A stretch of 64,000 nt of DNA from Girardia tigrina (taxonomy: Eukaryota): assembly GCA_001938485.1 (NCBI GenBank), contig MQRK01234068.1, positions 17,059 to 81,058 of the forward strand. The letters run 5' to 3'. Under the pieces are notes generated by a model. That model worked only from the letters and a program-made list of their open reading frames with translations, had not been told where the DNA came from and did not search any database. Below are positions 4,211-59,429 of the stretch, piece after piece. Both the position numbers and the translations under genes were made by a program. Within the stretch, counting starts at the first letter, position 1. Every line of letters begins with the position of its first letter.

Positions 4211-4812
4211 CTAATAATTAAAATTGAAAATGGTATAATTAACACAAAGTTTTAAAAATCGAATTAAAAATAAATACAAAATAATAATAATAAAAAAGGA
4301 AAAGAAATTTTAATTAATAAGAAGTCTTTTATGTATGGATTTGAAAATTTGAATTCTAATCGTTTTTTAGTGATTTAAAATATAATAAAACATTTTGCGA
4401 AACGATTTTGTTTTAATTGCATGCGATTATATTTTGATAATCGTTAATATTAATGTTGATATTTCTGTTGATACATGAGTAAATAAAAAGGAATTTCCTA
4501 TTCTTTCTCTGTGTCACAATCTTCTATTCGTTTTGTAAATTTCTCAATTTTGCTTCTAAATATTATATATCTTGTGTTTCTAGGACCGTCTAACAGTTTA
4601 TCAAACTTAAATATCCATTATTACCACTCTATTATTTATGTAAGGTAAAAAGATATAGAAAATTTAATTTGAATGTGATTTACATTAACTAATTTGAATA
4701 GTTTTCAACATTTATTATCCAATCAAATTTCAAATAATTATTTTTATTAATTTCCACTTTACCATTTTAAGAATAGTTAACATTATCTACCGTGTTTTGA
4801 TTTAAAGCGAAA

Positions 4813-5930
4813 ATGGTTCGAAGAAATATGACATTTAAAACTGCTATTTTGAGAAATAATAACAACTTTATTAAACGACAAACTTCAACGATTACAAAAC
4901 CTCAGATAGTTCCTCTGATAAATGATAATACGGATTGGTATATGGACAGTGTCATTCAAGAAATGATGATCAAGTCTTTTAAAGAATAGGTTTCGATTAT
5001 CAATAGAACGTCGTCAAGTAAACTAGTAAATAATAATAATAATGATTGGTACATGGACGAATCGATTCAAACTCTGTTGATGAATTCCGTTCAAGAAAAC
5101 ACTTCGATTATTGAAGCAAGCAAGCCTATTCCGCTCACTAATAATAATAATTGTTATATGAATAGTGCGATTCAAGCAATGTTAATTCCGTTTCTAGATT
5201 TATCAGATTATCTGAAATCACAACTGACTAGTAAAAAGATAATCGTACCTGAAAAATCTTGTCATGCTTTATCATTGATGAAACATTTTACATTGTCCTT
5301 TGAAAAGCAACAAGAATTTTCTATTTACAAATTTCTTAAAGAAAATTGTGAATTGAAATATTTTGGAAGTGAATTAACTTGGAACAAACAAGAAGACGCA
5401 CAAGAATTTCTTAACAATTTTCTCAATAAACTTGAAGAAGAAGTAAAACCNNNNNNNNNNNNNNNNNNNNNNNNNNNNNNNNNNNNNNNNNNNNNNNNNN
5501 TGAGATGGACGAAATGATCGTAAATTGCATTAGAAATAAAGTCGAAGGATATAAATGTCCGAGTTGTAATTCGATAAATGGGAGAGGCAGAAATTGCGAA
5601 ATATTTTCAAATAGTCCTAAATATTTGATCGTGTGTATAAAAAGATTTGTTAGAAATCCGATCTCATTAGCAATTAATAAGCTTAATGAAGAAATGAAAA
5701 TAGACGACAAATTTGAGTTATTATATGGAAATGATGATAATGTGAATATTTCCGGTTATGAATTGATCGGAGTTGTAAATCATGTCGGAGGAACTATTTC
5801 ACTGTTTGTTAAATACAAAGATCAATGGTATAAGACCAATGATCAAAGAATAACTACAGTGAGTTTTGAAGATATGAAAAAAGAGGTTAAATCCTCAAAT
5901 TATATAAATGTGTATAAAAAGATTTATTAG
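4813..5930 (+). pseudogene. Intronless ubiquitin-specific protease (peptidase C19), copy 1, probably inactive
   Basis: Cys box [42 protein letters not shown]; in-frame TAG at 4987-4989; net 15-nt deletion removes GHY; N gap 5451-5500; antisense inside the VPS35L intron. Confidence 0.85.
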
Positions 5931-6424
5931 AATTGTTTATTTTTTTATTTTTGTTTGTCGCTTGATTCTTTAGTACTTTAAAGTGATATCGGAATGTTTT
6001 TTAGCTTTATTTTTCGATGGTCATTTTTTTCTTTATAAAATATTTTTAATTGTAAAAAAATTTTAAAAGAAGACCAAACTAACTTGGTTTTTACTAATTA
6101 AACTTTTTTCTATTTAATTTAATTATATTGTTTACTTTATAATGATGTATTATTATTATTTTAGTCAAATTCTTTTTATATTTGTATATTTGCTTAATTA
6201 ATATTTGGCATGTACGTTTTTGTATTTTTACTTTATTTTTTTATTATTTTTGTTTTATTAAAATTATAAAATTTTGTAATAAACTTATGCAATATAATAA
6301 AAAAATAATAAATAATATAATTAAATCTGTTATTTTTAATTACTGAATGGTTTGAATATGAAAATGCTTTTAAAAATTAAACTTTACAGAGAAGCAATTG
6401 TTCAGAATTCAATTTTTACAAAGT

Positions 6425-6525
6425 TTATTATGATCAAAATATGAATACAGTGAGTTGTGAAGAAATAAAAAGAGGTTAAATCATCAAATTATATAAATGT
6501 GTATAAAAAATTTATTAGAATTGTT
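6425..6525 (+). repeat. Degenerate duplicate of the last ~100 nt of the USP ORF
   Basis: ACAGTGAGTT..AGAGGTTAAATCATCAAATTATATAAATGTGTATAAAAAATTTATTAGAATTGTTTA repeats 5855-5940. Confidence 0.8.
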
Positions 6526-6849
6526 TAGTTTTTTTTATTTTTTTAATTGAAAGAAAAAAATTTAATTAAATATTAAAAATTATGAAAAAAGAAAAATATT
6601 AAGTTACAAATTCGGAGTGAAACTCAAAATTACTTTGAAATAAAAAAATCAAAAAGGATGGATGGACGTAGGATCACTGAAGATTATTCTTTTTGAAAAA
6701 TTGTCGTCCTCTTGTTGTCTTGTCCTAATCAAATAGGAGAAAATTTCACTGTGTTGCATAATTTGCTGGTTTCAGTTCTCTTATCAACTAATTTTTGTGG
6801 GAATTCATGTGAAGATATTTCTTCAGTGTTTGATGTTCCGAAGATTTTG

Positions 6850-7139: not shown

Positions 7140-8402
7140 TTTTTTTCGTTTTCCCACTCATATTTACAAGATAACAAAGCATGTAAACAGAACACATTTA
7201 TTCTTCGAAATACAGACCTTTATTTTCGAAAGTCTTCAACCATCTTTCAGCCAATTCCTCGTTTCCACTAATATACCACTCTGTCGTTTTGGAAGCAAAG
7301 AAATTGCGGCACCCTTGCCCAACCTCTTCTACTGACTAGAACTACCACTCTTTGAGAAAATGCGCCAGCATTTTTAGAAAAAATTATCTAAGAGGTTGTA
7401 GTAACTGGGAGCAAGGTCATGGCTGTAGACAGCGTGTGGCAAAACTTCGATCCCCTACAGCTCTTGCACTTTACTACAAGTCAAACGTAGTGTGTACCGG
7501 AACATAGTCTTGTAAAATAACTTGACTGTGATTGACCAATGCCGGGTAACACTCACAGAGAATGGCGTAGACTCTGTCCTGCTGCTGAGCGTAGAGGTTG
7601 ACATGCACAGTACGCCCCTCTGGAACCAGCTCGAAGTGAATCCAACCCTCGAAATCCCCATTTACACGGAGCATAACTTTGCAATCGAAGCGTCCTTGAT
7701 TAACATCGGGTTGAGCGGGCATACCAGGGTAAAGCTACTGATTCTCCTTGTTGGGATTACGGAAAAAAAATCCACTTTTCATCCTCCGTCACGATCCTTC
7801 TGAAGAAGCTCATGTCATGGGAGTGAGCAAGCAATTCTTCGCAGATATCAAGTCGCTGTCAGTTCGTGAGGAATTTTTCGACACCGTCTATTGACAAGGT
7901 CAATCTGATGAAGATGAGGTTTAATAGTGAGTTGTGAAGGACCAAGCTCTGTTGATAATCTCCGCATGTTAATGCAGGGCTGCTCGTCCACAGCTTGACG
8001 TAGAGTGTCATTATCAACAACAGATGGTCGCCCAGAGCGAGGTTGGTCTTCGAAATTGACATCACCACTTGAGAAACGCTTGAACCACAACTGTGACATA
8101 CGAACACTGATCGTACCTTCGAATTCTTCTTCACATATTTCCCGGGCTGCAGCATCTGCGTTGAAGCCTTTTTCCAGTTATGTCGCAGAAGGACTCGAAT
8201 TCCGTATTTTTCGCTCTCCATAATCTGATAAGAATAAATAAACAAACGCTTCATAAATAAACCAGCATTATACAAGGAGATTCGTCATGCAATACGATAA
8301 TAAATAATATAAAAAACAATAATGCCAAAATAGAATATCCATAGAAAAGAACTTTCACAATCTAAGGCATAGAAAAACGAAAAAAACTTTTGAATCACCC
8401 TA
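7140..8402 (-). mobile_element. Decayed mariner element
   Basis: WFKRFSSGDVNFEDQPRSGRP, IPHELT, C-terminal LAERWLKTFENKGLYFEE*, TIR-like end near 8402. Confidence 0.9.
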
Positions 8403-8692
8403 GTATCTTGTTACTGAACCGCTTCATAAATACAACATATAAAAATAATAAATGGTTTTCTAATCGTAGTGATAATAGATAAATAAAATGATAGGAAAAT
8501 TGCTGAAAATCTTCAAGCAAAAAATCCCACAAAATCAGAAAGCTGCATACTTCATGAAAGAATCTTTACATCATTATTTTTATCATAACTTATACAACAA
8601 TAAACCTGTATAAAAATATTTTAAAATTTATTAAAATGCAATTTTTTATATTTTTTAAACTTTTTTCACTAAATAATCATACAAATAATTAC

Positions 8693-10190
8693 CTGAAAAT
8701 CACACTGTTTACTGAGAATCTTATTCAAAATTGACATCAACTGATTCGAGAACTCCTGGCATGCATTTTCCCTCATCACTTCTTTAACTAAATATGCCAA
8801 AAACCGATTGATATGAATAATATCAAAGTTCTTCGCGAGAAACTCGGCCCACGCATCACAACATTCAATAAAACACCGCAAATCATTAAATTTCGTTAAC
8901 GATTTCCATACGAGTTTAAATAGTGACATCGCTTGTTCTTGACCAAGTGTGAATGAAAGTGAAACACAAGCACCGAGCTGTTTCCACATGAGATAGCGTG
9001 GATAACCGCTGTCCGGAAGAGTCTGAATCATCTCTGCAAAAAATAATGGTTTCGTTTTTATTAATTCCACGGGAATTGAATTCAGGAGCGAATGAACGAG
9101 CAATGCATTTTGACTCTTTTCCACCTGCTTTATAACCCGATCAATATCATTTGATGTTGTGCTCAAACCGACACACAGACACTGCAGAATCCAGTCGACT
9201 GCCGGTACAAACAACCGCAAATATGAAATCATTTTGTCATAAGAATCAATCACTATTCCCTCGGAATCCAAACTCGCTCCACTAATAAACGATAGTCGAT
9301 TCAGAGACTCTAAAGTGTCTTCAAATGCCAATTTCAAATACTCCTTTCGACCGAAATCCATCGATATTCCTATTCGAGCAACATAAGAACGCGCGTAAGT
9401 TGCCAATAACGGATTCCCTATTCCGCGAGCCATTTTCATCAATCGGATCAATGATTCTGGTATTGATTTAGAATCGAAAAACCGGTAACACGATAGGAGA
9501 CCTGTTTCAATATATAATCGCGCCACGAGTTCTCTAATCGATGCAACTTTATACAACCAATTTCTTGCAGTTTCTTTAGCAACCTCCGGTATTTGGTTCT
9601 CGTGGAAATTGTCTGGTAAAGCAATTGGAACTCGTGAACCACGCTGAATAATGGCAGACTTTGCTTTTAATCTTTCGAAAACCAACGAACCGAAATTATC
9701 GACAAGATCGGTGATTAGAACGAATTTGCTGGGGAAAAATTGGGCAACGTTTGCCTCTGATAGAAGTTTTGTTGATTGAATTATGATTTGAAGTGATTTA
9801 ACACGTTGACCATCCCGCCATGACGTTTTTAGAGCTGACTGAAGTTCGTTTATCTTATCTGTGAACTGTTGAACGGAGAGATTTGATGTTTCGTGAACTT
9901 CTTCGTCAAATTGGTCTAGTTGTTCAAGTTTACTTTTGACTTTATCGAGAATCGATGAGGTTTTACTAATTAATCGACTATCTTCATCTGGTTTTTTCAT
10001 TAGAAAACTACTGATGATTGTCAATTTCTCGGATGTTGTATATGTAGTGAGAATAGACATTCGCTTAGATGACCATGGTTCCATATTAAGCACAGGAGAG
10101 TGGACTGAATCGGTTCTGTCTGTCGATGCCAAAGGATCTCTAAGAAGATCTAATGGAGAATTTTGCGATAGTGGATCCCAATTCGATGAT
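8693..10190 (-). CDS. VPS35L: VPS35L large exon (5' boundary uncertain)
   Basis: ~499 codons with DPLS motifs, EPWSSKRMSIL, QRVKSLQIIIQ, FPSKFVLITD, AKETARNWLYKVASIREL, RGIGNPL; donor CAG|GTAATT at 8692; candidate acceptor at 10191, first in-frame ATG at 10084. Confidence 0.93.
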
Positions 10191-33000: not shown

Positions 33001-36000
33001 GCTTAAACTGAAAGAAATTCCACGAATAAACTCCTGCACACCGATTTCACCATCATAAAAACGCTGTTGCAATTTTGGAATACGTTCACTTATTGAATTA
33101 TACTTTTTATTTTTTTTTGTTAATAACTTGCCCAGCATTAATTTGTGCCATCAATATTTCTGTAAATCCTTGTTCCTTTCTTATACATGATATTAAATCA
33201 TAAATATTGGGGTGATGCTTAGCAACTAAATTATTTAAGCGGTTGTGCCACCCCTCAACATCATTGTTAGTCCGCCGTCTGATGCCATACATATTCCACA
33301 TTTCTTTTTTAATATTTTGAAACCATTGCTGGTGGAAGTACTGGAATAGAGGTCTAATATTTACCGATGCCTCGTCCCTGAGATTGTCGAAAGTTTGTTG
33401 AACAATTTGTTCAGGAACAAACGCCAAAGCCATAAGCATACGTATTTTCGTTCTAAGTTCCTGATTACTACCATAATCGACACTAAAACCTAATTTCTGA
33501 ACTTGTCTAAATATCGCTTGGCAGAAATGAAATAACAACCACGTAGACGACTTTGCGGAAACTCTTGTTGTAACGCAACTATTAAACCTTTCTCGAAATC
33601 GAATGTGATTAAATTTGGTGAGAGTATCAAATTATGCTCCAGACATAAATCCAGAATTTTACGAAAAACTGATGTGTATGTTTCAGCATTTTTATCTATC
33701 AGAATACAACAAATTAATGGAAGTACTTTATTTTGGAGAAGAGCATGGATTGTAAATATTTGTTTATAAAAGGGAAGTGCTACCCGAAATGTACCGTCCA
33801 TGAACCAATGGTTATTGCTGGATAACATTTGTAAATTACTTATTGTTCCAAGTAATATAATTGATTTGTCCACACTGATAAACAATAGGAATAATTGGCC
33901 TGAAATAGTTTGTGTCAATTGATCAGGTATGTTGACGTCATTTAAACTTTGAGGCAAAACCGGTAATTTCTCATGACGTGCTCGATACAANNNNNNNNNN
34001 NNNNNNNNNNNNNNNNNNNNNNNNNNNNNNNNNNNNNNNNNNNCAGAAATTTCAGCTGCCGCATCAGAATGTATAATCGGAATACTGCGCGTTTCTGTTT
34101 TTGCCTGTTGCTTCATCTTACAAATAGTAGACTTTACGATACCAATTTCTGGTGCTGGTGGATAAGAATGCCCTTGTTTTTCAATCGGATGACAGTTGTC
34201 AATATCTGACCAAAGTCATCCTTTGCAACCGATTGTACGACATCGCCAAATTTTTCTAATTGCGGTGACTGTATCTACACGGTAGGAATATCCTCCATAA
34301 TTGCATGCTTCAGAACCTTTAAGAGTTGTTAATATTTCCATTGAGTTTTTCACAAACAAAATTTAAAAATAATGTTATGGAAAAATCGAAAATTAAAACA
34401 AGCTTTAAATTATATTATTAATAATATTATATCTTAAAAATATCTTATTAATATAAATATTCTCCAATTTAAATAACAAAANNNNNNNNNNNNNNNNNNN
34501 NNNNNNNNNNNNNNNNNNNNNNNNNNNNNNNTATTATATCTTAAAAATATCTTATTAATATAAATATTCTCCAATTTAAATAACAAAAATCTCATTTTAA
34601 AATAAAAAATATCTTAATATAAAAAATCTTATACATATATCTTAAAATATTTTATTAATATAAATATTCTCCAATTTAAATAACAAAAATTTCATTTTAA
34701 AATAAAAAATATCTTAATATAAAAAATCTTATACATATATCTTAAAATATCTTATTAATATAAATATTCTCCAATTTAAATAACAAAAATCTCATTTTAA
34801 AATAAAAAATATTTTAATATAAAAAATCTTATAAATATATCTTAAAATATCTTATTAATATAAATATTCTCCAATTTAAATAACAAAAATCTCATTTTAA
34901 AATGAAAAATTTCATTCGCTATTTTGCGGAATTCGCTGTTTTGATGATTCGCTGTTCTGATGAATCACTGTTTTGATGATTCGCTGTTTTGATGATTCGC
35001 TGTTTTGATGAATCGCTGTTTTGGAATTCGCTGTTTTGTAATTCGGTGTTTTGATGATTCACTGTTTTGACATTCGCTGTTTTGGGATTCGCTGTTATGT
35101 AATTCGCTGTTTTGTAACTCGCTGTTTTCGGGTATAACCAAATTTGTCAGCAAAAGGAAAATTAACTAAATCCTCATTAGGGACATAAAAAAATCATGTA
35201 ACATAATTTGAAGACGCACAAATTTATCAAGAAATAAACATAAGGTTGACGATTAGAATTTTAAGTCACTTAAATTTATTGTACAATTCAGTATATCTTA
35301 ACCCTACAATGCGCATTTTTTTTAATATATGCAACACATGCGGCCAGTATTACAAACTGAACTGTCATTTTTGTTGACAAAATATATTGCATCTATGACT
35401 TTATGGGCAGTTATCATTCCATAGACAATGTTTTTGGTTCACAGTATGTAAACACTCAAAGAATATCACGTGATTAAAAGATATTGAGGTAAAATATGGT
35501 TGATTCAAATATGAATCACGGCGCATTGTAGGGTTAAGTACAGGTTATATATGATCTAGATCGCTTTACTAAAAAATTCCTTTCAATTTCTGAGTCTCTA
35601 CAAAAAGTTCTGTTCTTAATGAAAATTGAGAACTTTTATTTTACAAATAGTTTTTTAAGTCTAATTTACCGTCCATTTATGTGTCAATTGTTCAAGTCTT
35701 TTGGAATTATGAGATTCGAATCATGTTTGACATTTAAACATTTGACTACCATTGGGACAACACGTCCCAAGCAATTTCAAAAAATTCCAGAGAGATAAGT
35801 TAGTATGCGAAATCGGTTATTTGCATCCCAGTTGTATATAGTGAATGTACTCTTGCGCGCCATCTACACACACACAACCTGAAAACTTGCCAGTACTTGT
35901 CAGTTGCGAGTTTGCTTTTGCGCTAGGACCATCTCATTTTTATTTAATATGAGTAAAAAAATGGTTCGGTAGTCAAAGTGTTCAGGAAGTACTGCGAAAA

Positions 36001-48500: not shown

Positions 48501-51500
48501 AATTATAAATAGAAATATGTTATTATAATACTAATTATTCTCACACAACTATTTATTTTTTTTAATTCAGATTAAATATTTTTAATGTTTTATTTTTTTA
48601 TTTATTTATTTTTTATATTTATTTTTTTAATTATTAATTATATATATGTATCAAAACACTAATGATAAAAATTAACAGAAATTGTCATTCAAAGAGTTTA
48701 TATTACTCTTCGAGATGAAAGAGAGATGGAGAAAGAGGAGTCAGATTGCTATAAATAATGATAACGACAACATATAATAATAAAAACAATTTGAATCCCA
48801 AACAATAATTCTAATAAATCTTTTTATACATATTTATATAATTATGTACTTTTTTTCATTTTTTCAAAGTTCAAATCAATTTAAATCTTGCTTTAAGATT
48901 AACTACCAGTACCATCATTATAATAATTAATAATATTTTTTTTATTTTAGGACCAAATCAATCAATTTACCATGAATGTATTTAGATGAGAGAAGATGAT
49001 TTACGAAATCTAAGAATTCTAACATGTTAATTTTTTTTAACTTTCAAATCTATAGTCATTTTTAAAATATTTTTATATTATTTTATAATTTAAACTAATA
49101 CAAAAATAATGAAAAAAATAAATTTCAAATACAAAAATCAACATGCCAAATATTAAATAAATAAATATAAATTATCACAATAAAATCAAATTATGATTTA
49201 AATCAAACTAAAAAATTATAACTGGTCTCAAAACTTAAAAAAGATTTTAATATAATTTTAAAGCAAACAATATAATTAAATTAAATAGATTAAAATTAAA
49301 TTACTTAAAAAAGAGTTAGTTAGGTTTTATATACAATTAAAAATAGTTTATATATTAAAAAATAACATCAAAAGACTAAGCTAAAAAACTTTCCGATATC
49401 ACTTTAAAGTACTAAAGAATCAAGCGATAAACAAAAATAAAAAATAAACAATTCTAATAAATCTTTTTATACACATTTATATAATTTGATGATTTAACCT
49501 CTTTCTTCATTTCTTCAAAACTCACTGTAGTTATTCTTTGATCATTGGTCTTATACCATTGATCTTTGTATTTAACAAAGCTGTAATAATGTCCACGTGA
49601 AATAGTTCCTCCGACATGATTTACAACTCCGATCAATTCATAACCGGAAATATTCACACTATCATCATTTCCATATAATAACTCAAATTTGTCGTCTATT
49701 TTCATTTCTTCATTAAGCTTATTAATNGCTAATGAGATCGGATTTCTAACAAATCTTTTTATACACACGATCAAATATTTAGGACTATTTGAAAATATTT
49801 CGCAATTTCTGCCTCTCCCATTTATCGAATTACAACTCGGACATTTATATCCTTCGACTTTATTTCTAATGCAATTTACGATCATTTCGTCCATCTCACT
49901 ATTTCCATCAATGTTTATGAATAGCATATTTTCATTTACGATATTCGGTTGAGATGCTTTTGTATGTTGACAATTGTCACAAAACAATCTTACATCACGA
50001 TTAATTTGAAATGGTAAAGCTTCGTTTCCAATAAACGGTTTTACTTCTTCTTCAAGTTTATTGAGAAAATTGTTAAGAAATTCNNNNNNNNNNNNNTGTT
50101 TGTTCCAAGTTAATTCACTTCCAAAATATTTCAATTCACAATTTTCTTTAAGAAAATTGTAAATAGAAAATTCTTGTTGCTTTTCAAAGGACAATGTAAA
50201 ATGTTTCATCAATGATAAAGCATGACAAGATTTTTCAGGTATGATTATCTTTTTTTTGTGAATCTAAAAAATTGAAAAATAATTACACTTTTTTCACCAA
50301 TTACAATCAAAAACAAAATTTAAATATTAAATAGTACTTTAATTGTTTTATATTAGAAAGAAATCCCTTAGGATGGGGAACATAATAAAGTAAAAAAAAT
50401 TTCTTGACAAAATAAATAAGGGGTTTGATATTCCAAGTTTCTGAGAAACTTTGAGGATAATTTAAAAATTAAAAGACTCTTAAAAACATCTTTAAAAACA
50501 AGTAGTCAATGCCGCCGGATCTCGTCCGATCTCTGAAGTTAAGCAACTAACGGCCGCGTTAGTACTTTTTTGGGTGACCGATAAGGAAATCGCAGGACTT
50601 TTGACTACAAGTAAGGTCAGGCAAGCTGTCTGCTACAGGTACCATATAAACCTGTGGAGCGGAGAATTGCCAATTTTGACCGAACATTTATTTTTGCCAC
50701 TATTAGTGAATATAAATAAAATATATAACTAAATTAACAAATTAAATAAATTGCTTTAATTAAATAAAATGAATAAATTAAATAAATAATTAAAAATAAA
50801 AGAAAATTAATCAAATAACAAGAAAAATGAAAATGAATCGGTTCGTCAAGAAATAAATAAATCGTTAGAATAAAACTCGCAAAATTTCATGAAATTAAAC
50901 TCCACGAAACGACAGCTCTTTTATTTGAACTGGAACAACAGTCATTTGATTAATTATCAAATTTTTAATTCGTTCTGAATAATGTATGGTGAGCCTCATT
51001 TTTATTTTCTCTTTCAATGTAATAAATGGAATATGTGTGATTGTGTAAGTTTCTTTATTGCATGTATGTGTGTTGGTGTGAATGTCTGAGTGCGTGTGTA
51101 TGAATGTATTGTGAATAATATGTTAATTTGATTGGAGAATTGTGAGTGTGTGTATTGAGTGGCTAGCTTTTGTATTTCGTCACCAATTATCATCAATTAC
51201 AAAAAAAAGTAAAAGTGTTCAATTTAAAAAAAAGGTTTGTCAGTTTGAAAAGGGATAATAAAAGGTCTTTGTGTCAATCTCAATTGTTTTTCAATCACAA
51301 TTCTTTTTTAAAATACAAAAGAAATAATTTAATTGAACGAACAAAAAGAATAAATTGATGAAATGGCTGATAGAGAGGTGAAAGTGCATAGAGCTAAATT
51401 AGTTGATGGAGTGGTTAATGCGATGAGAGATGTCGTTAAAATGACCGGCGAATTGAACATGGATGAGCGTGACTTATTATCGGTAGCATATAAAAACGTA

Positions 51501-54500
51501 ATCGGAAGTCGGAGAGCGTCATGGAGGATGATGAGTAGCATTGAACAAAAAGATCCTTCTCGACTTCCATTGATTAAAACCTACCGAAGTCAAATTAAAA
51601 AAGAATTGAAAGTCTGCATTGATATAATAGCCTTACCCGATGAGTTCTTGTTGGTGACTTCAAATGGCGGTGAAGCTAAAGTGTTCTTAAAAATGAAAGG
51701 CGATTATTACCGTCTTCTGTCCAAAATATCGTGGAGACACGGAATCCTGTCCAACCTGTATTATCTGTCCCATGGTCGAATGGTTGGCGACTAAACCAGT
51801 TCCCTCATCCAAAACAACCTGGGTGTAGAGGTGTGTTGACACCTAACAGGATGAAAAACAAAACCTAGAAAAGGGTGGATGAGCTCCTTGGAGCCAACAG
51901 CCATCCATAGCTGGAGAGGAGATAGGCGCCACTAGTTTCCTTGCCTACTAAGACACTCAAAATATGCAAAACCAGGCCATAATGCTTGTGCATAATTGAC
52001 TGCACCCACGACCCAAAGGCTACGGTACCAAAAACACATCGTTAATTAAGCATATAATAGGGAGCTTAAAATGGATAATTGAAATAAATTTCCAATTAGA
52101 ATATACAATTCTAGACAAGTCTAAATTATTCTTTTCTTTGTGTTTATCTTGTCAAGCTTTGTTATATAGCTCAGAATGGTTAAGATAATTTAATACGTTT
52201 TGGAAAAATTTCTTGGTTGATATTTTGTCATTTGAACACCTTGTAAACTGCCAATATTTTAATAAAATTAATTAATAAACTAAAAGAAACAATATTTAAT
52301 AATTGTAAAATATTTAATTTAAATACTTCGAATACTCCAATAATTATGACCCAATCTTTACAAGATCAGAATAATAATAAATTTCCTATTTTATACAGAC
52401 AAGTTTAAGAAAAGATAACGTTTGTAATTGAAAATGTACGTCTTTTTCCTAAATAATAACTTACGTTTAAATTAGGTGTAAGTGGCTGAAAGATCAATGA
52501 TTCTGTTTTTCATATCTTAAATAAACTCTACAAATAAACTCTTAAATACTACAATGATAAATTAGGTTGTCCAAACCAAACGTAGCGGTTTTAAAACTAA
52601 ATGTAACCATTATCAATGTGTATTACCCGATTTCAAAGTTCAGATAGCTTTTGCACACTACCCATACATTAGTTCATTCACAGCTGCCACATTAAAATCA
52701 TCCCATGTTTCGTAACTAGTACTTCTTACGTTTCTTTTTAATTGTCCAGAACAATTAAAATCTCATGTACTAATCTCTGGTGAATATAGTGAATGACTCT
52801 AAGTTTCAATATGCTTTGATTCAAGAAAATCTTTAATTATTCGCGATTTATGAAGCCAAGCATTTTGATAGAAAAGAATAGGACTCTTATAAGGCTTTCC
52901 CTGCAGACAAGATTTTTTTACACGTCAGCATTGCCTGTTGTTCTCTCGTGTAAAAGTTATCAGAAATAGATTTCATAAAAATTCAATGCTATAAATAAAG
53001 TTACGTTTGTTCCCGTGTATGTCTTCTCGAGGCTCAGAAGAGCATGGCTCGGCAGAGAACAACCAAACTCGTTGATGTGACTTATATGCTACCAGATACA
53101 CCCAGTTCTCATCAATATTAAGAGTCTGCTTTAGGAGTGAATTATCACGATCATAATTTGCTATACAAGTCAAAACACGATGTTCTTTTTGTGCTTCTGT
53201 TATTTCATGTGGGATCCATTTACCCAGCTTTTTTTCATTTGTAAATCAACAAACAATTCATTGTACCGTATATTTTGGGATGTCTAACTTTAGCGAAATG
53301 GCACGGAGAATTAGCTTGGAGAATCTGCAGATCAGGATCAATGTTGGAGACCGTTTCATAGATAATATCATCACTGTAGACGGGATAACATTGTATCTTT
53401 ATGTCCCATAATCTAAAAGATAGTCGTAAGAATAGAAACTGTCAGGAGAAAGCAGCTCACTGAAAATGCGGTCCTCAAATTGATACCGAAAGGCTCTCGT
53501 GCTGACGGTGTTTTGGGACTCCAATGGAATTATTCTGACTGACTTTGCTGAAAAAAGCCTTCAAAAATCTCGTTATTCGTTGGGAAAATTGTGTCAGTGC
53601 ACAAGGAAATTATTTTGAAAAATAACGCCTATTTACCATGCTTGTTCTAAATACAAAATGTTGTGGTGATATCTTAAGTATTTCTATATTAGTCTCACGA
53701 CTTATTGAGCGCACCATGTAATTTGGGAATGTACATGTTGTTTATGCATAGTTTCGTTTGAACAAGCAGCATGAACAAGCAAAATCGAGTAAACCAACAA
53801 CACAAATGCTAGCGATGGATGAGGACGGATTGTCAATTCCATGGCAACAAAATATTAAAGAAATCTGTGAAATAATTAAACAAATAGAAGAAGGAAAAGA
53901 GACAAAATTTAAGCAAAGCGATAGATGTATAGAAACTTTTGATAACAGTATTTAGATTCCGAAGGAAACAAGGAACGATTGTATTTTATTTTTCCATAAA
54001 TTTATGTGTCATGCGGGAGTAAATAAAACGTACACATTCACGAGAGAAGAATATGAAATGGAGGAGTTTATTAAAGACGTTGAAAGAATAGTGCGAGCAT
54101 GTGTAGTGTGTCAAACATCTAAAACTTGTACGGGAACAACAAAAGAAAACACAGTGAACTTGATTTCAAAACGACCATTTGACGATATTTACATGGATTA
54201 TTGTGGACCTATGCCAATCATAAATGGAAAAAAATATTTTGGGTATAATAGACAGATTTAGTAGGTATGTTAGTCTCACAGCAGTAAATAACAGCAGACC
54301 ATACCACGTCAATGGATATTTAGGTTTGGAGCTCCAGCATGTATCCACGTGGACCATGGAAAGTATTCGAATCGCTGGCATTTATGGAATTTGTAAATCT
54401 CGATTGATTAAAATAAACTTCTCAAGTCCATACTATCATAGTTCGAATGGAATAATAGAGACAATTTTGAACACTTCGAGATTCATTAAATGCGACTTTA

Positions 54501-58214: not shown

Positions 58215-59429
58215 CAGATACATAGAAAGCTAATATAAAGCATGGAAAACATAAGTATATGTTCTAAAGACAGCTCTATTTTTCTAATGTATGACGAGCG
58301 CGTCATCTATCTGCCAAGTTCCAACTGTAGAACAAATCTGTGCAACACGTATATGAAAAGAAGAATTTAAAATACAATAAAAAAATATTGTTAACGTCTT
58401 TGACATATTACAACATTTTATAATCAACTTTCATTCAAAAATCTTTTAAAATGCTTGAACGTTATTGTCACTTATTGGTAAAATATTTTAAAGAGTTCAT
58501 GGATCAATATTCCCATTTAATATATTACGATAATCTCACAATAAAATATTTTAAAAATATTAGTTTATTCTAATTATTTTAATAATTAGAAAGGATACTG
58601 ATAAATTTGTGAGTAGTATTACAAAATAAATTTATAAAACCTATTACTAAAGACATTTGTTATGGATATTCTCAGTCAGCATAATGAAATAATAAATTAG
58701 AACGCATTGGCAAAAAAGAATCGTTATTTAAAATACAGAAGGTTGATATCAGAATATATCAATGTAAGTAATAAATTATTTTCGCAAAACATGACGTAAT
58801 GCACCTATGTTGCTAGGCAGCATTTATATTGAGGATCATAGCCACGATGGGTGTTTAGATGAGAACATGTTTCTCGATATTACACTCGGGAAGGTCTGAG
58901 AAAAGCGGTTTGTGATCGAAATGATTGATTCTTCTAAAAGAATATGCACTACAATAACGTGTATCATATAATGCGAATCGGAGATTATTGATTCAATATG
59001 AGGTGAAGCATGTATTGGTACTTTGAAATGTGCATCGATAGCGTGTAGAGTGAAATTGTGGCGGAAACGAGAGTTTCTTACTCAATTCAGACTATACTGA
59101 TCCTCAAATCATTTTTTACTTTATCTACCTTACCCCTATGAATAGGAATGAGTCGTCATCGAAAATCGTTCTCGACCGCAACAAGACTTATCACGCTCGT
59201 CTCAAATCAATGAACCAACAATCAGTTTAAAATGAAAAAATCTCAATTTAAAATGAAAACGTTATATCGAACCCTCAAGGAAGTTATGTGAATTTTGAAT
59301 TAAAAAACTGTCGTCGTTGGAATTTTGTAAGATTTAGAAATGATTTTTCCTGAATAAGGAACGATTAGAGTATTAAGTTTTTTATCTTGTGCAATAAATC
59401 TAAATTTCTAAATCTTACAAAATTCAAAG

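Follow-up and report, generated by a model that had tools for sequence, protein, structure and literature searches.

Two degenerate extra copies of the Cys box in a decayed ubiquitin-specific protease gene of Girardia tigrina and in its intact relative

Ubiquitin-specific proteases (USPs; peptidase C19, Pfam PF00443) offer several described systems with which the gene reported here can be compared. The USP17/DUB3-like genes of mammals are multicopy, intronless and recently duplicated, and pseudogenes occur among them. USP39/Sad1 and PAN2/USP52 are USP-fold proteins that are catalytically inactive, and other USPs are held in check by autoinhibition devices such as the switching loop and C-terminal tail of USP7, the blocking loops of USP14 and the inserted ubiquitin-like (Ubl) domain of USP4, the paper on this last Ubl being marked as retracted. 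We describe a USP gene in a stretch of 64,000 nt from Girardia tigrina (GenBank assembly GCA_001938485.1, contig MQRK01234068.1), here called the window, which is AT-rich eukaryotic DNA with about 28% GC and seven runs of N. The gene, called copy A (4813-5930, plus strand), carries in its 5' part three tandem versions of the segment that encodes the Cys box, and only the last of them has the catalytic Cys. In the explanation that we prefer, with a probability of roughly 0.7, the two extra units are disarmed duplications of the Cys box that have survived in the variable N-terminal extension of a lineage-specific, intronless and multicopy USP, and the copies present in the window are dead, comprising a pseudogene, a truncated inverted duplicate and relics.

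Translation from the ATG at 4813 on the plus strand gives an N-terminal stretch and then three homologous in-frame units, each with a Cys-box-like motif, and the peptides quoted for these units in a preliminary description of the window agree exactly with this translation. The start codon and the first 28 codons (4813-4896), assigned from the first ATG after an in-frame stop and collinear with positions 314-397 of the intact relative L001 described below, are followed on the same strand by unit 1 (4897-5007, 37 codons), unit 2 (5008-5112, 35 codons) and unit 3 (5113-5220). At the nucleophile position, units 1 and 2 have TGG, encoding Trp (4936-4938 and 5047-5049, respectively), and unit 3 has TGT (5152-5154); the nucleophile is thus confined to the third unit, as the preliminary description had pointed out. 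Unit 3, whose Cys box reads NNNNCYMNSAIQ, is the true Cys box of a USP and the place where the catalytic domain begins, as judged from the Pfam UCH match, the invariant Cys and the AlphaFold2 model; units 1 and 2 carry Trp and lack the nucleophile by which such a box is recognised. An in-frame TAG at 4987-4989 inside unit 1 breaks the gene into the separate open reading frames (ORFs) 4813-4989 and 5053-5517 of the ORF list, and this single stop had likewise been noticed before.

The repetition was established by several searches. A repeat search of the window returned a single family with three 80-nt copies at 4921-5000, 5032-5111 (70% identity) and 5137-5216 (61%), and the start-to-start spacings of the units, 111 and 105 nt, are each divisible by three. 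Tandem Repeats Finder detected only an (AAT)5 run, the units being too diverged for it. A pattern of 21 specified bases common to units 1 and 2 matched the window twice (0 matches in 100 shuffles), and the unit-1 piece matched the unit-3 region by tblastn (E=1e-4). When a hidden Markov model (HMM) of the Cys box was built from eight relatives in a leave-one-out manner, unit 1 scored about 21 bits and unit 2 about 9-10 bits, the best of 500 shuffles reaching 2.8. Outside the three units, a six-frame scan of the window found no Cys-box motif. Chance does not account for the three-unit repeat. As a separate observation, an (AAT)n microsatellite encoding an Asn run lies directly 5' of the codon for W in unit 2 and of that for C in unit 3 (window 5029-5043; in unit 2 it is the (AAT)5 run before the Trp codon), and the length of the Asn run varies between copies, with four Asn in copy A and five in L001.

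Two other sequences serve as references for copy A. When pieces of copy A were compared with the window by tblastn, a second copy, copy B, was found on the minus strand at 49457-50254 with 91-95% amino-acid identity. A word-index search with copy B then returned one protein, P0001 (402 aa, 96% identical), whose source is a 2062-bp JGI metagenome contig, L001. This contig holds one unbroken intronless ORF of 407 codons from its first ATG, in which the three units carry W, W and C; it has CAG (Gln) at the position of the TAG of copy A, and its His box is intact. P0001 possesses the Cys box, the QEDAxEF motif, a four-Cys zinc ribbon, the GHY His box and the catalytic Asp, and its Pfam UCH match covers residues 103-398 (E=1.1e-32), starting at unit 3. 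Because the intact P0001 carries the three-unit architecture, this architecture is genuine and no accident of the copy A locus. Outside the ORF, copy A and L001 are homologous over only about 108 nt on the 5' side and some tens of nt on the 3' side. The conserved 5' flank (4705-4812, plus strand), delimited by alignment with L001, contains a CCAAT-like motif and marks the upstream limit of the homology; in 30-nt windows, 27-30 of the 30 positions are identical from 4719 on, and 10-20 of the 30 farther upstream. Since the flanks are mostly unshared, the two sequences come from different loci or different genomes.

In the catalytic part of copy A, Pfam PF00443 (UCH) matches 4990-5448 (E=1.4e-9, from unit 3 on) and 5502-5927 (E=2.2e-11); together with the matches of copy B (E=1.4e-21) and P0001, these two hits bear out the earlier assignment of the gene to peptidase C19. 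The first part of the domain (5221-5450, plus strand) includes the QEDAQEFL motif and extends to a run of 50 N (5451-5500) within the gene, which is an assembly gap or a mask and into which the first CxxC of the zinc ribbon falls. The second part (5502-5930, plus strand) contains the second zinc-ribbon CxxC, a His box lacking GHY and the KTND region of the catalytic Asp/Asn, and it ends with the stop codon TAG at 5928-5930. The interval between the same N-run flanks, compared in length only, is 138 nt in both copy B and L001, and because it is divisible by three there, the N run is only a placeholder, and the change of frame across 5451-5500 in copy A is no evidence of a frameshift.

The lesions of copy A are clear in the alignment with copy B and L001. 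A net 15-nt in-frame deletion after 5802 removes GHY, and with it the catalytic His, from a box that reads ...GHYYSFVKY in copy B and L001. None of the nine aligned family members lacks this His, and 71 aligned USPs all share His358, Cys110 and Asp374. The combination of GHY and a following Asp/Asn, which is typical of the USP His box, is thus present in copy B and P0001 and absent from copy A. Lesions of the kind expected in pseudogenes occur in both window copies: copy A has TAG for the CAG of L001 and no catalytic His, and copy B is truncated at its 5' end. Since the catalytic His has been lost and a nonsense codon has been acquired, copy A is a USP-derived pseudogene and not an active member of the family. 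The preliminary description had taken it for a USP gene with one stray stop; the stop is real, but the catalytic His is also gone. Two ways of reading through the TAG were considered and rejected. A ciliate-type code, in which TAG stands for Gln and which the alignment of TAG with CAG might suggest, is incompatible with the fact that all copies and relatives end at the same TAG and that relatives of 350-426 codons contain no in-frame TAA or TAG, and a short intron removing the TAG is incompatible with L001, which is collinear and continuously open.

Copy B (49454-50254, minus strand), delimited by tblastn and the Pfam UCH match, is an inverted and 5'-truncated duplicate that keeps GHY, lacks the three units and contains N at 50084-50096 and 49727. 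By blastn, copy A 5233-6272 pairs with copy B 50254-49080 at 85% identity over 833 columns; the inverted duplicate therefore begins just past unit 3 and takes in about 340 nt of 3' flank, the part at 49080-49453 (minus strand) being common to the 3' flank of copy A at 5931-6272. Copy B is without the first ~143 codons and so without the Cys box, and an in-frame TAG stands three codons upstream of the start of homology. Because the 3' flanks are shared, copies A and B represent one recent inverted segmental duplication. A decayed and out-of-frame 3'-end relic of a further USP copy is present at 6430-6542 (plus strand), found by the repeat search and 90% identical by blastn to 49545-49433, and a short relic of the same kind, the counterpart of 6481-6513, was found by tblastn downstream of copy B at 48814-48846 (minus strand). 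Both relics correspond to the last ~35 codons plus the stop. They follow copies A and B, respectively, after about 500-600 nt and suggest that a tandem duplication took place before the inverted one. The 15-nt deletion in the His box, the 50-N run, the inverted copy B and the two relics were all absent from the preliminary description. Just beyond the homology breakpoint of copy B, a 5S rRNA-like element was found at 50492-50605 (plus strand; Rfam RF00001, 45.8 bits, the gathering score being 38); a 5S gene or pseudogene is conceivable, as is a short interspersed element derived from 5S that marks the breakpoint of the duplication.

To place the gene among USPs, we carried out an exhaustive phmmer search with P0001, which found eight other close clusters (P0002 and P0004-P0010) with 36-50% identity over the whole catalytic domain and lengths of 348-426 aa; past these there is a large gap, followed by generic USPs. 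The sole named member is P0007, which is UZP64864.1, 'ubiquitin specific protease 8 [Schmidtea mediterranea]', with 38% identity, and the others derive from SRA or metagenome assemblies or from UniParc. The catalytic residues Cys, His and Asp are present in all members, as are the four Cys of the zinc ribbon, and every member has an N-terminal extension of 55-119 aa before the Cys box that cannot be aligned between members. When these extensions were scanned with the leave-one-out profile, two strong extra copies of the Cys box were found in P0001. P0009 has one modest degenerate copy with a Glu inserted after the Cys (0 of 500 shuffles scored as high), and P0002 has one weak copy that keeps the Cys and has a 7-residue insertion between the NINVN loop and CFVNSIQ (1 of 500 shuffles as high); the same scan found no extra unit in six of the nine family clusters. 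The repeat architecture is therefore not conserved across the family, two clear extra units being seen only in P0001 and the window gene, and a second-iteration HMM to which the extra units of P0001 had been added revealed no more decayed units in the other members. The two loop segments of P0002 are identical at 26 of 33 nt, and this likeness suggests that its duplication may have been a separate one or may have been homogenised. The contig of P0002 (L002, 1-1507) has 21.5% GC overall and 10.6% in its flanks and is far more AT-rich than the window.

We also surveyed USPs at large, using the 150 best USP representatives, 142 of which showed any match to a generic Cys-box profile. Unit 1 of P0001 was the best nearby second Cys-box match among these 142, and none of the 141 other representatives has a nearby second Cys box; where multiple Cys boxes do occur in the survey, they belong to whole-domain repeats only and are more than 300 residues apart. 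Searches for further three-unit genes gave the same picture, since a word-index search with residues 1-140 of P0001 returned P0001 only, and a locus search found no related loci in viral contigs or in metagenome contigs. A scan of metagenome contigs with the 21-base DNA pattern gave 13 loci, all of which were discarded as GC-rich chance matches without tblastn support, and a viral origin of the gene was rejected because no relative was found in viral contigs. A literature search on duplicated Cys boxes and planarian USP expansions found nothing relevant. A duplicated Cys box within one USP ORF thus appears to be undescribed, in agreement with the preliminary description, which knew of no earlier account of it. 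The survey also contained P0003, P0012, P0015, P0016, P0019 and P0045, which are arrays of 3-10 near-identical whole USP domains with Cys boxes ~320-600 residues apart and which we take to be USP17/DUB3-like arrays. One such model is a 'LOW QUALITY PROTEIN' from Thomomys bottae, and these long models are probably fused tandem USP17-like genes.

The structure was predicted with AlphaFold2 for the naturally intact P0001 from an alignment of 71 sequences. The mean predicted local distance difference test score (pLDDT) is 82.9, and the USP domain at residues 100-402 is mostly above 90, as is unit 3, which forms helix alpha-1. The score stays below 40 in residues 1-35; unit 1 is modelled as a long helix at 36-64 with pLDDT 45-66, and unit 2 as a short helix at 79-88 with about 50. 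Foldseek matched the model to USP35, USP12/USP46, USP30, USP36 and USP2 with E-values of ~1e-21 to 1e-23. The fingers, palm, thumb and zinc ribbon of the USP fold were looked for in the intact P0001 and are present there, and the four Cys of the ribbon are invariant in the family. Judging from the pLDDT, the P0001 model gives no sign of a unit helix docking on the domain or replacing alpha-1. In this model, units 1 and 2 lie outside the confident USP fold, and of the three units only unit 3 is within the catalytic fold.

Selection was examined from the ratio of nonsynonymous to synonymous changes (dN/dS), obtained by Nei-Gojobori counts. Between copy A and L001, dS is 0.055 and dN/dS is 0.25 for the whole gene (p=0.004 against neutrality) and 0.15 for the catalytic part, and these values indicate that the gene lineage was under purifying selection until recently and that the lesions of copy A are young. 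The ratio is 0.16 between copy B and L001. Between copies A and B, which stem from a younger duplication, dS is 0.018, and the ratio of 0.44 comes from only 4 nonsynonymous and 2 synonymous differences. For the first 128 codons of copy A against L001, dN/dS is 0.41, with 7 nonsynonymous and 4 synonymous differences (p=0.15 against neutrality).

The units were compared with one another over 30 codons, in which units 1 and 2 are 68% identical in nucleotides and are 58% and 53% identical, respectively, to unit 3; units 1 and 2 also have Trp and Asp in common. Between units 1 and 3, 10 of the 18 core residues are kept, and the proportion of synonymous differences (pS) is 0.79, so that synonymous sites look saturated, with only about 9 such sites available. 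We further simulated neutral, AT-biased divergence starting from unit 3. The identity of unit 2 to unit 3 in the core was reached in 19% of these simulations, and the identity observed between units 1 and 2, for which omega is about 1.1, was reached in 32% (p=0.32). The corresponding value for unit 1 was lower and is weighed below. Taken together, these comparisons lean to weak constraint on units 1 and 2, as far as so few sites can suggest.

The explanation that we prefer may be put as follows. A 5' segment of 105-111 nt encoding the Cys box (loop and helix alpha-1) would have been duplicated in frame twice, the first extra copy losing the nucleophile (TGT to TGG) and changing YMNS to YMD(S/E), and this Trp-bearing copy would then have been duplicated again to give units 1 and 2. 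Duplication, loss of Cys and second duplication is the simplest history, given that unit 1 resembles unit 2 more than either resembles unit 3 and that both have Trp and Asp. The two units are non-catalytic and belong to an N-terminal extension that varies between family members, is little conserved and is for the most part either unstructured or loosely helical; they presumably persist there mainly because translation of the enzyme encoded downstream requires an open frame. In the window, copy A has the CAG to TAG nonsense change in unit 1 and the in-frame deletion of the catalytic His, and copy B is a recent inverted partial duplicate without a Cys box. We infer that units 1 and 2 have no specific function.

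Several observations weigh against this explanation, and most of them speak for a different one, in which the extra units function as a module that regulates the intact enzyme, namely as pseudo-active-site helices that act in cis (by autoinhibition or as a pro-region) or in trans (by dimerisation or partner binding) and are kept by selection. The core of unit 1 (18 codons) is as close to unit 3 as observed in only 4% of the neutral simulations (p=0.04); units stayed free of stops in 15% and 13% of them, or about 2% jointly, and the ORF is nevertheless open across both; and every length change between units is divisible by three. Both units retain the hydrophobic pattern (W/C)YM..xIQxx(L/M)(M/L) and are predicted to be helical, and the absence of the arrangement from the 141 other USP representatives implies that it is no common neutral accident. 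The degenerate extra Cys boxes of P0002 and P0009 suggest, from their sequences, that duplication or retention may have been recurrent. However, the open frame is no independent sign of unit function, because a stop or frameshift there would abolish the downstream enzyme, and selection on the catalytic domain alone accounts for its retention. The N-terminal dN/dS is indistinguishable from 1, units 1 and 2 look neutral with respect to each other, and AlphaFold2 places unit 3 confidently in the fold while giving the other unit helices low confidence. The way in which the extra copy is degenerate also differs among members (W replaces C in P0001, 7 aa are inserted in P0002 and a Glu in P0009), and we know of no precedent for swapping helix alpha-1 out of a USP core. 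The preliminary description had taken the kept frame and pattern to suggest selection, which a p-value of 0.15 for the N-terminal codons and unit identities marginally above neutral simulations (p=0.04-0.32) do not sustain, and its proposal of decoy helices in an autoinhibitory role found no positive support in helices of pLDDT ~45-66 beside a domain above 90. It had also stated that its view would be refuted if other members lacked the repeats, and such a lack is largely what was found, with six of the nine clusters having none and two a single weak copy. On this balance a regulatory module appears rather unlikely. Its more specific form, in which the Trp-bearing pseudo-Cys-box helices of the P0001 type are a selected module that regulates the deubiquitinase by occupying the cleft or by self-association, the repeated duplication of the Cys box in P0001, P0002 and P0009 then being adaptive, is unlikely as well.

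The state of copy A can also be read differently. The relation of L001 to the window gene may be paralogous, allelic or orthologous, and the lesions of copy A are known from one draft-quality assembly with several N runs, both of which count against the account that we prefer. Copy A might accordingly still work, either because its lesions are artefacts of the assembly or strain, or because translation starts at the ATG at 5053 in unit 2 and yields a His-less, non-catalytic, ubiquitin-binding pseudoenzyme, for which inactive USP-fold proteins such as USP39/Sad1 and PAN2 would be a precedent. The ORF from this ATG does keep unit 3 and the remaining domain, the His-box deletion is in frame, and the dN/dS of 0.25 indicates that most of the history was constrained, but the branch specific to copy A is too short for such an estimate. 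Two independent disabling lesions in one copy, a 15-nt deletion with adjacent substitutions that is unlikely as a sequencing error, and surroundings resembling a graveyard (the truncated copy B, the two 3' relics, a truncated 14-3-3 fragment and transposon remnants) make a working copy A quite unlikely. Another reading, with mutually exclusive exons or an error of the assembly as the source of the units and a single Cys box in the mature protein, is extremely improbable: the units are homologous, similar in length and divisible by three as such exons would be, but they abut, so that introns would not fit between them, all three recur in an uninterrupted ORF on the independent contig L001, and they differ by 30-47%, so they are not collapsed or expanded reads. 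Duplicated and disarmed Cys boxes carried along by a gene whose window copies have died therefore remain our preferred explanation.

Several other elements were found in the window. Pfam recognises an ORF at 51354-51794 (plus strand) as 14-3-3 (E=9e-31). It corresponds to no more than residues 3-140 of its closest relative and has suffered an internal deletion; the remainder was not found downstream, and the best database matches are metagenome proteins with 71-75% identity. This ORF is probably a truncated pseudogene. A fragment of a Tc1/mariner-type helix-turn-helix domain at 7848-8275 (minus strand), with weak Pfam matches, is a transposon remnant, and a remnant of a MULE transposase domain at 33493-33990 (minus strand; E=3e-12) adjoins N runs at 33991-34043 and 34482-34531. 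A full-length match to nuclear RNase P RNA lies at 58830-59106 (plus strand; RF00009, 77 bits, E=3.8e-20). The longest ORF of the window (8672-10132, minus strand, 487 aa) has no Pfam match and matches VPS35L, a retriever subunit, in PDB (residues 112-564, E=3e-91); it is a genuine exon of a host gene, with 1.4 kb uninterrupted by an intron.

This locus illustrates how short in-frame duplications near the 5' end may persist as N-terminal baggage in a fast-evolving, multicopy and intronless USP gene, and how fast such genes decay, the window containing a copy with nonsense and deletion, a truncated copy and two relics. In annotation, neither of the window copies should be called an active deubiquitinase. 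If the units were functional after all, they would be an unusual regulatory element, made by copying and disarming the catalytic helix of the enzyme itself.

Compared with known systems, the inactive and autoinhibited USPs provide precedent both for the loss of catalytic residues and for flanking or inserted segments that regulate the active site, but none of them uses a duplicated Cys-box helix, and in P0001 no contact between units and domain is predicted on the basis of pLDDT. Among USPs of solved structure (USP2, USP12/46, USP35, USP30 and USP36), of which USP2 is the closest by sequence, the P0001 model superposes with template-modelling (TM) scores, normalised to the target, of 0.7-0.8, whereas the sequence identity is just 17-21%. 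P0001 differs from them in being a minimal catalytic domain without known accessory domains and in having an N-terminal extension built from two degenerate duplicates of the segment with its Cys box; the window copies, in addition, are inactivated. With the small USP family of 348-426 aa, P0001 and the window gene share the invariant residues, the domain length and a poorly conserved extension of 55-119 aa, and they differ from it in the two clear extra units, which are confined to them. The USP17/DUB3-like genes are alike in being intronless and in having several recent copies with pseudogenes included, although they have no close sequence relation to the window gene (26% identity). In those genes the repeat comprises the entire gene or domain, and the Cys boxes are separated by more than 300 residues, whereas in the window gene only the Cys-box segment of ~36 residues is repeated, inside one ORF.

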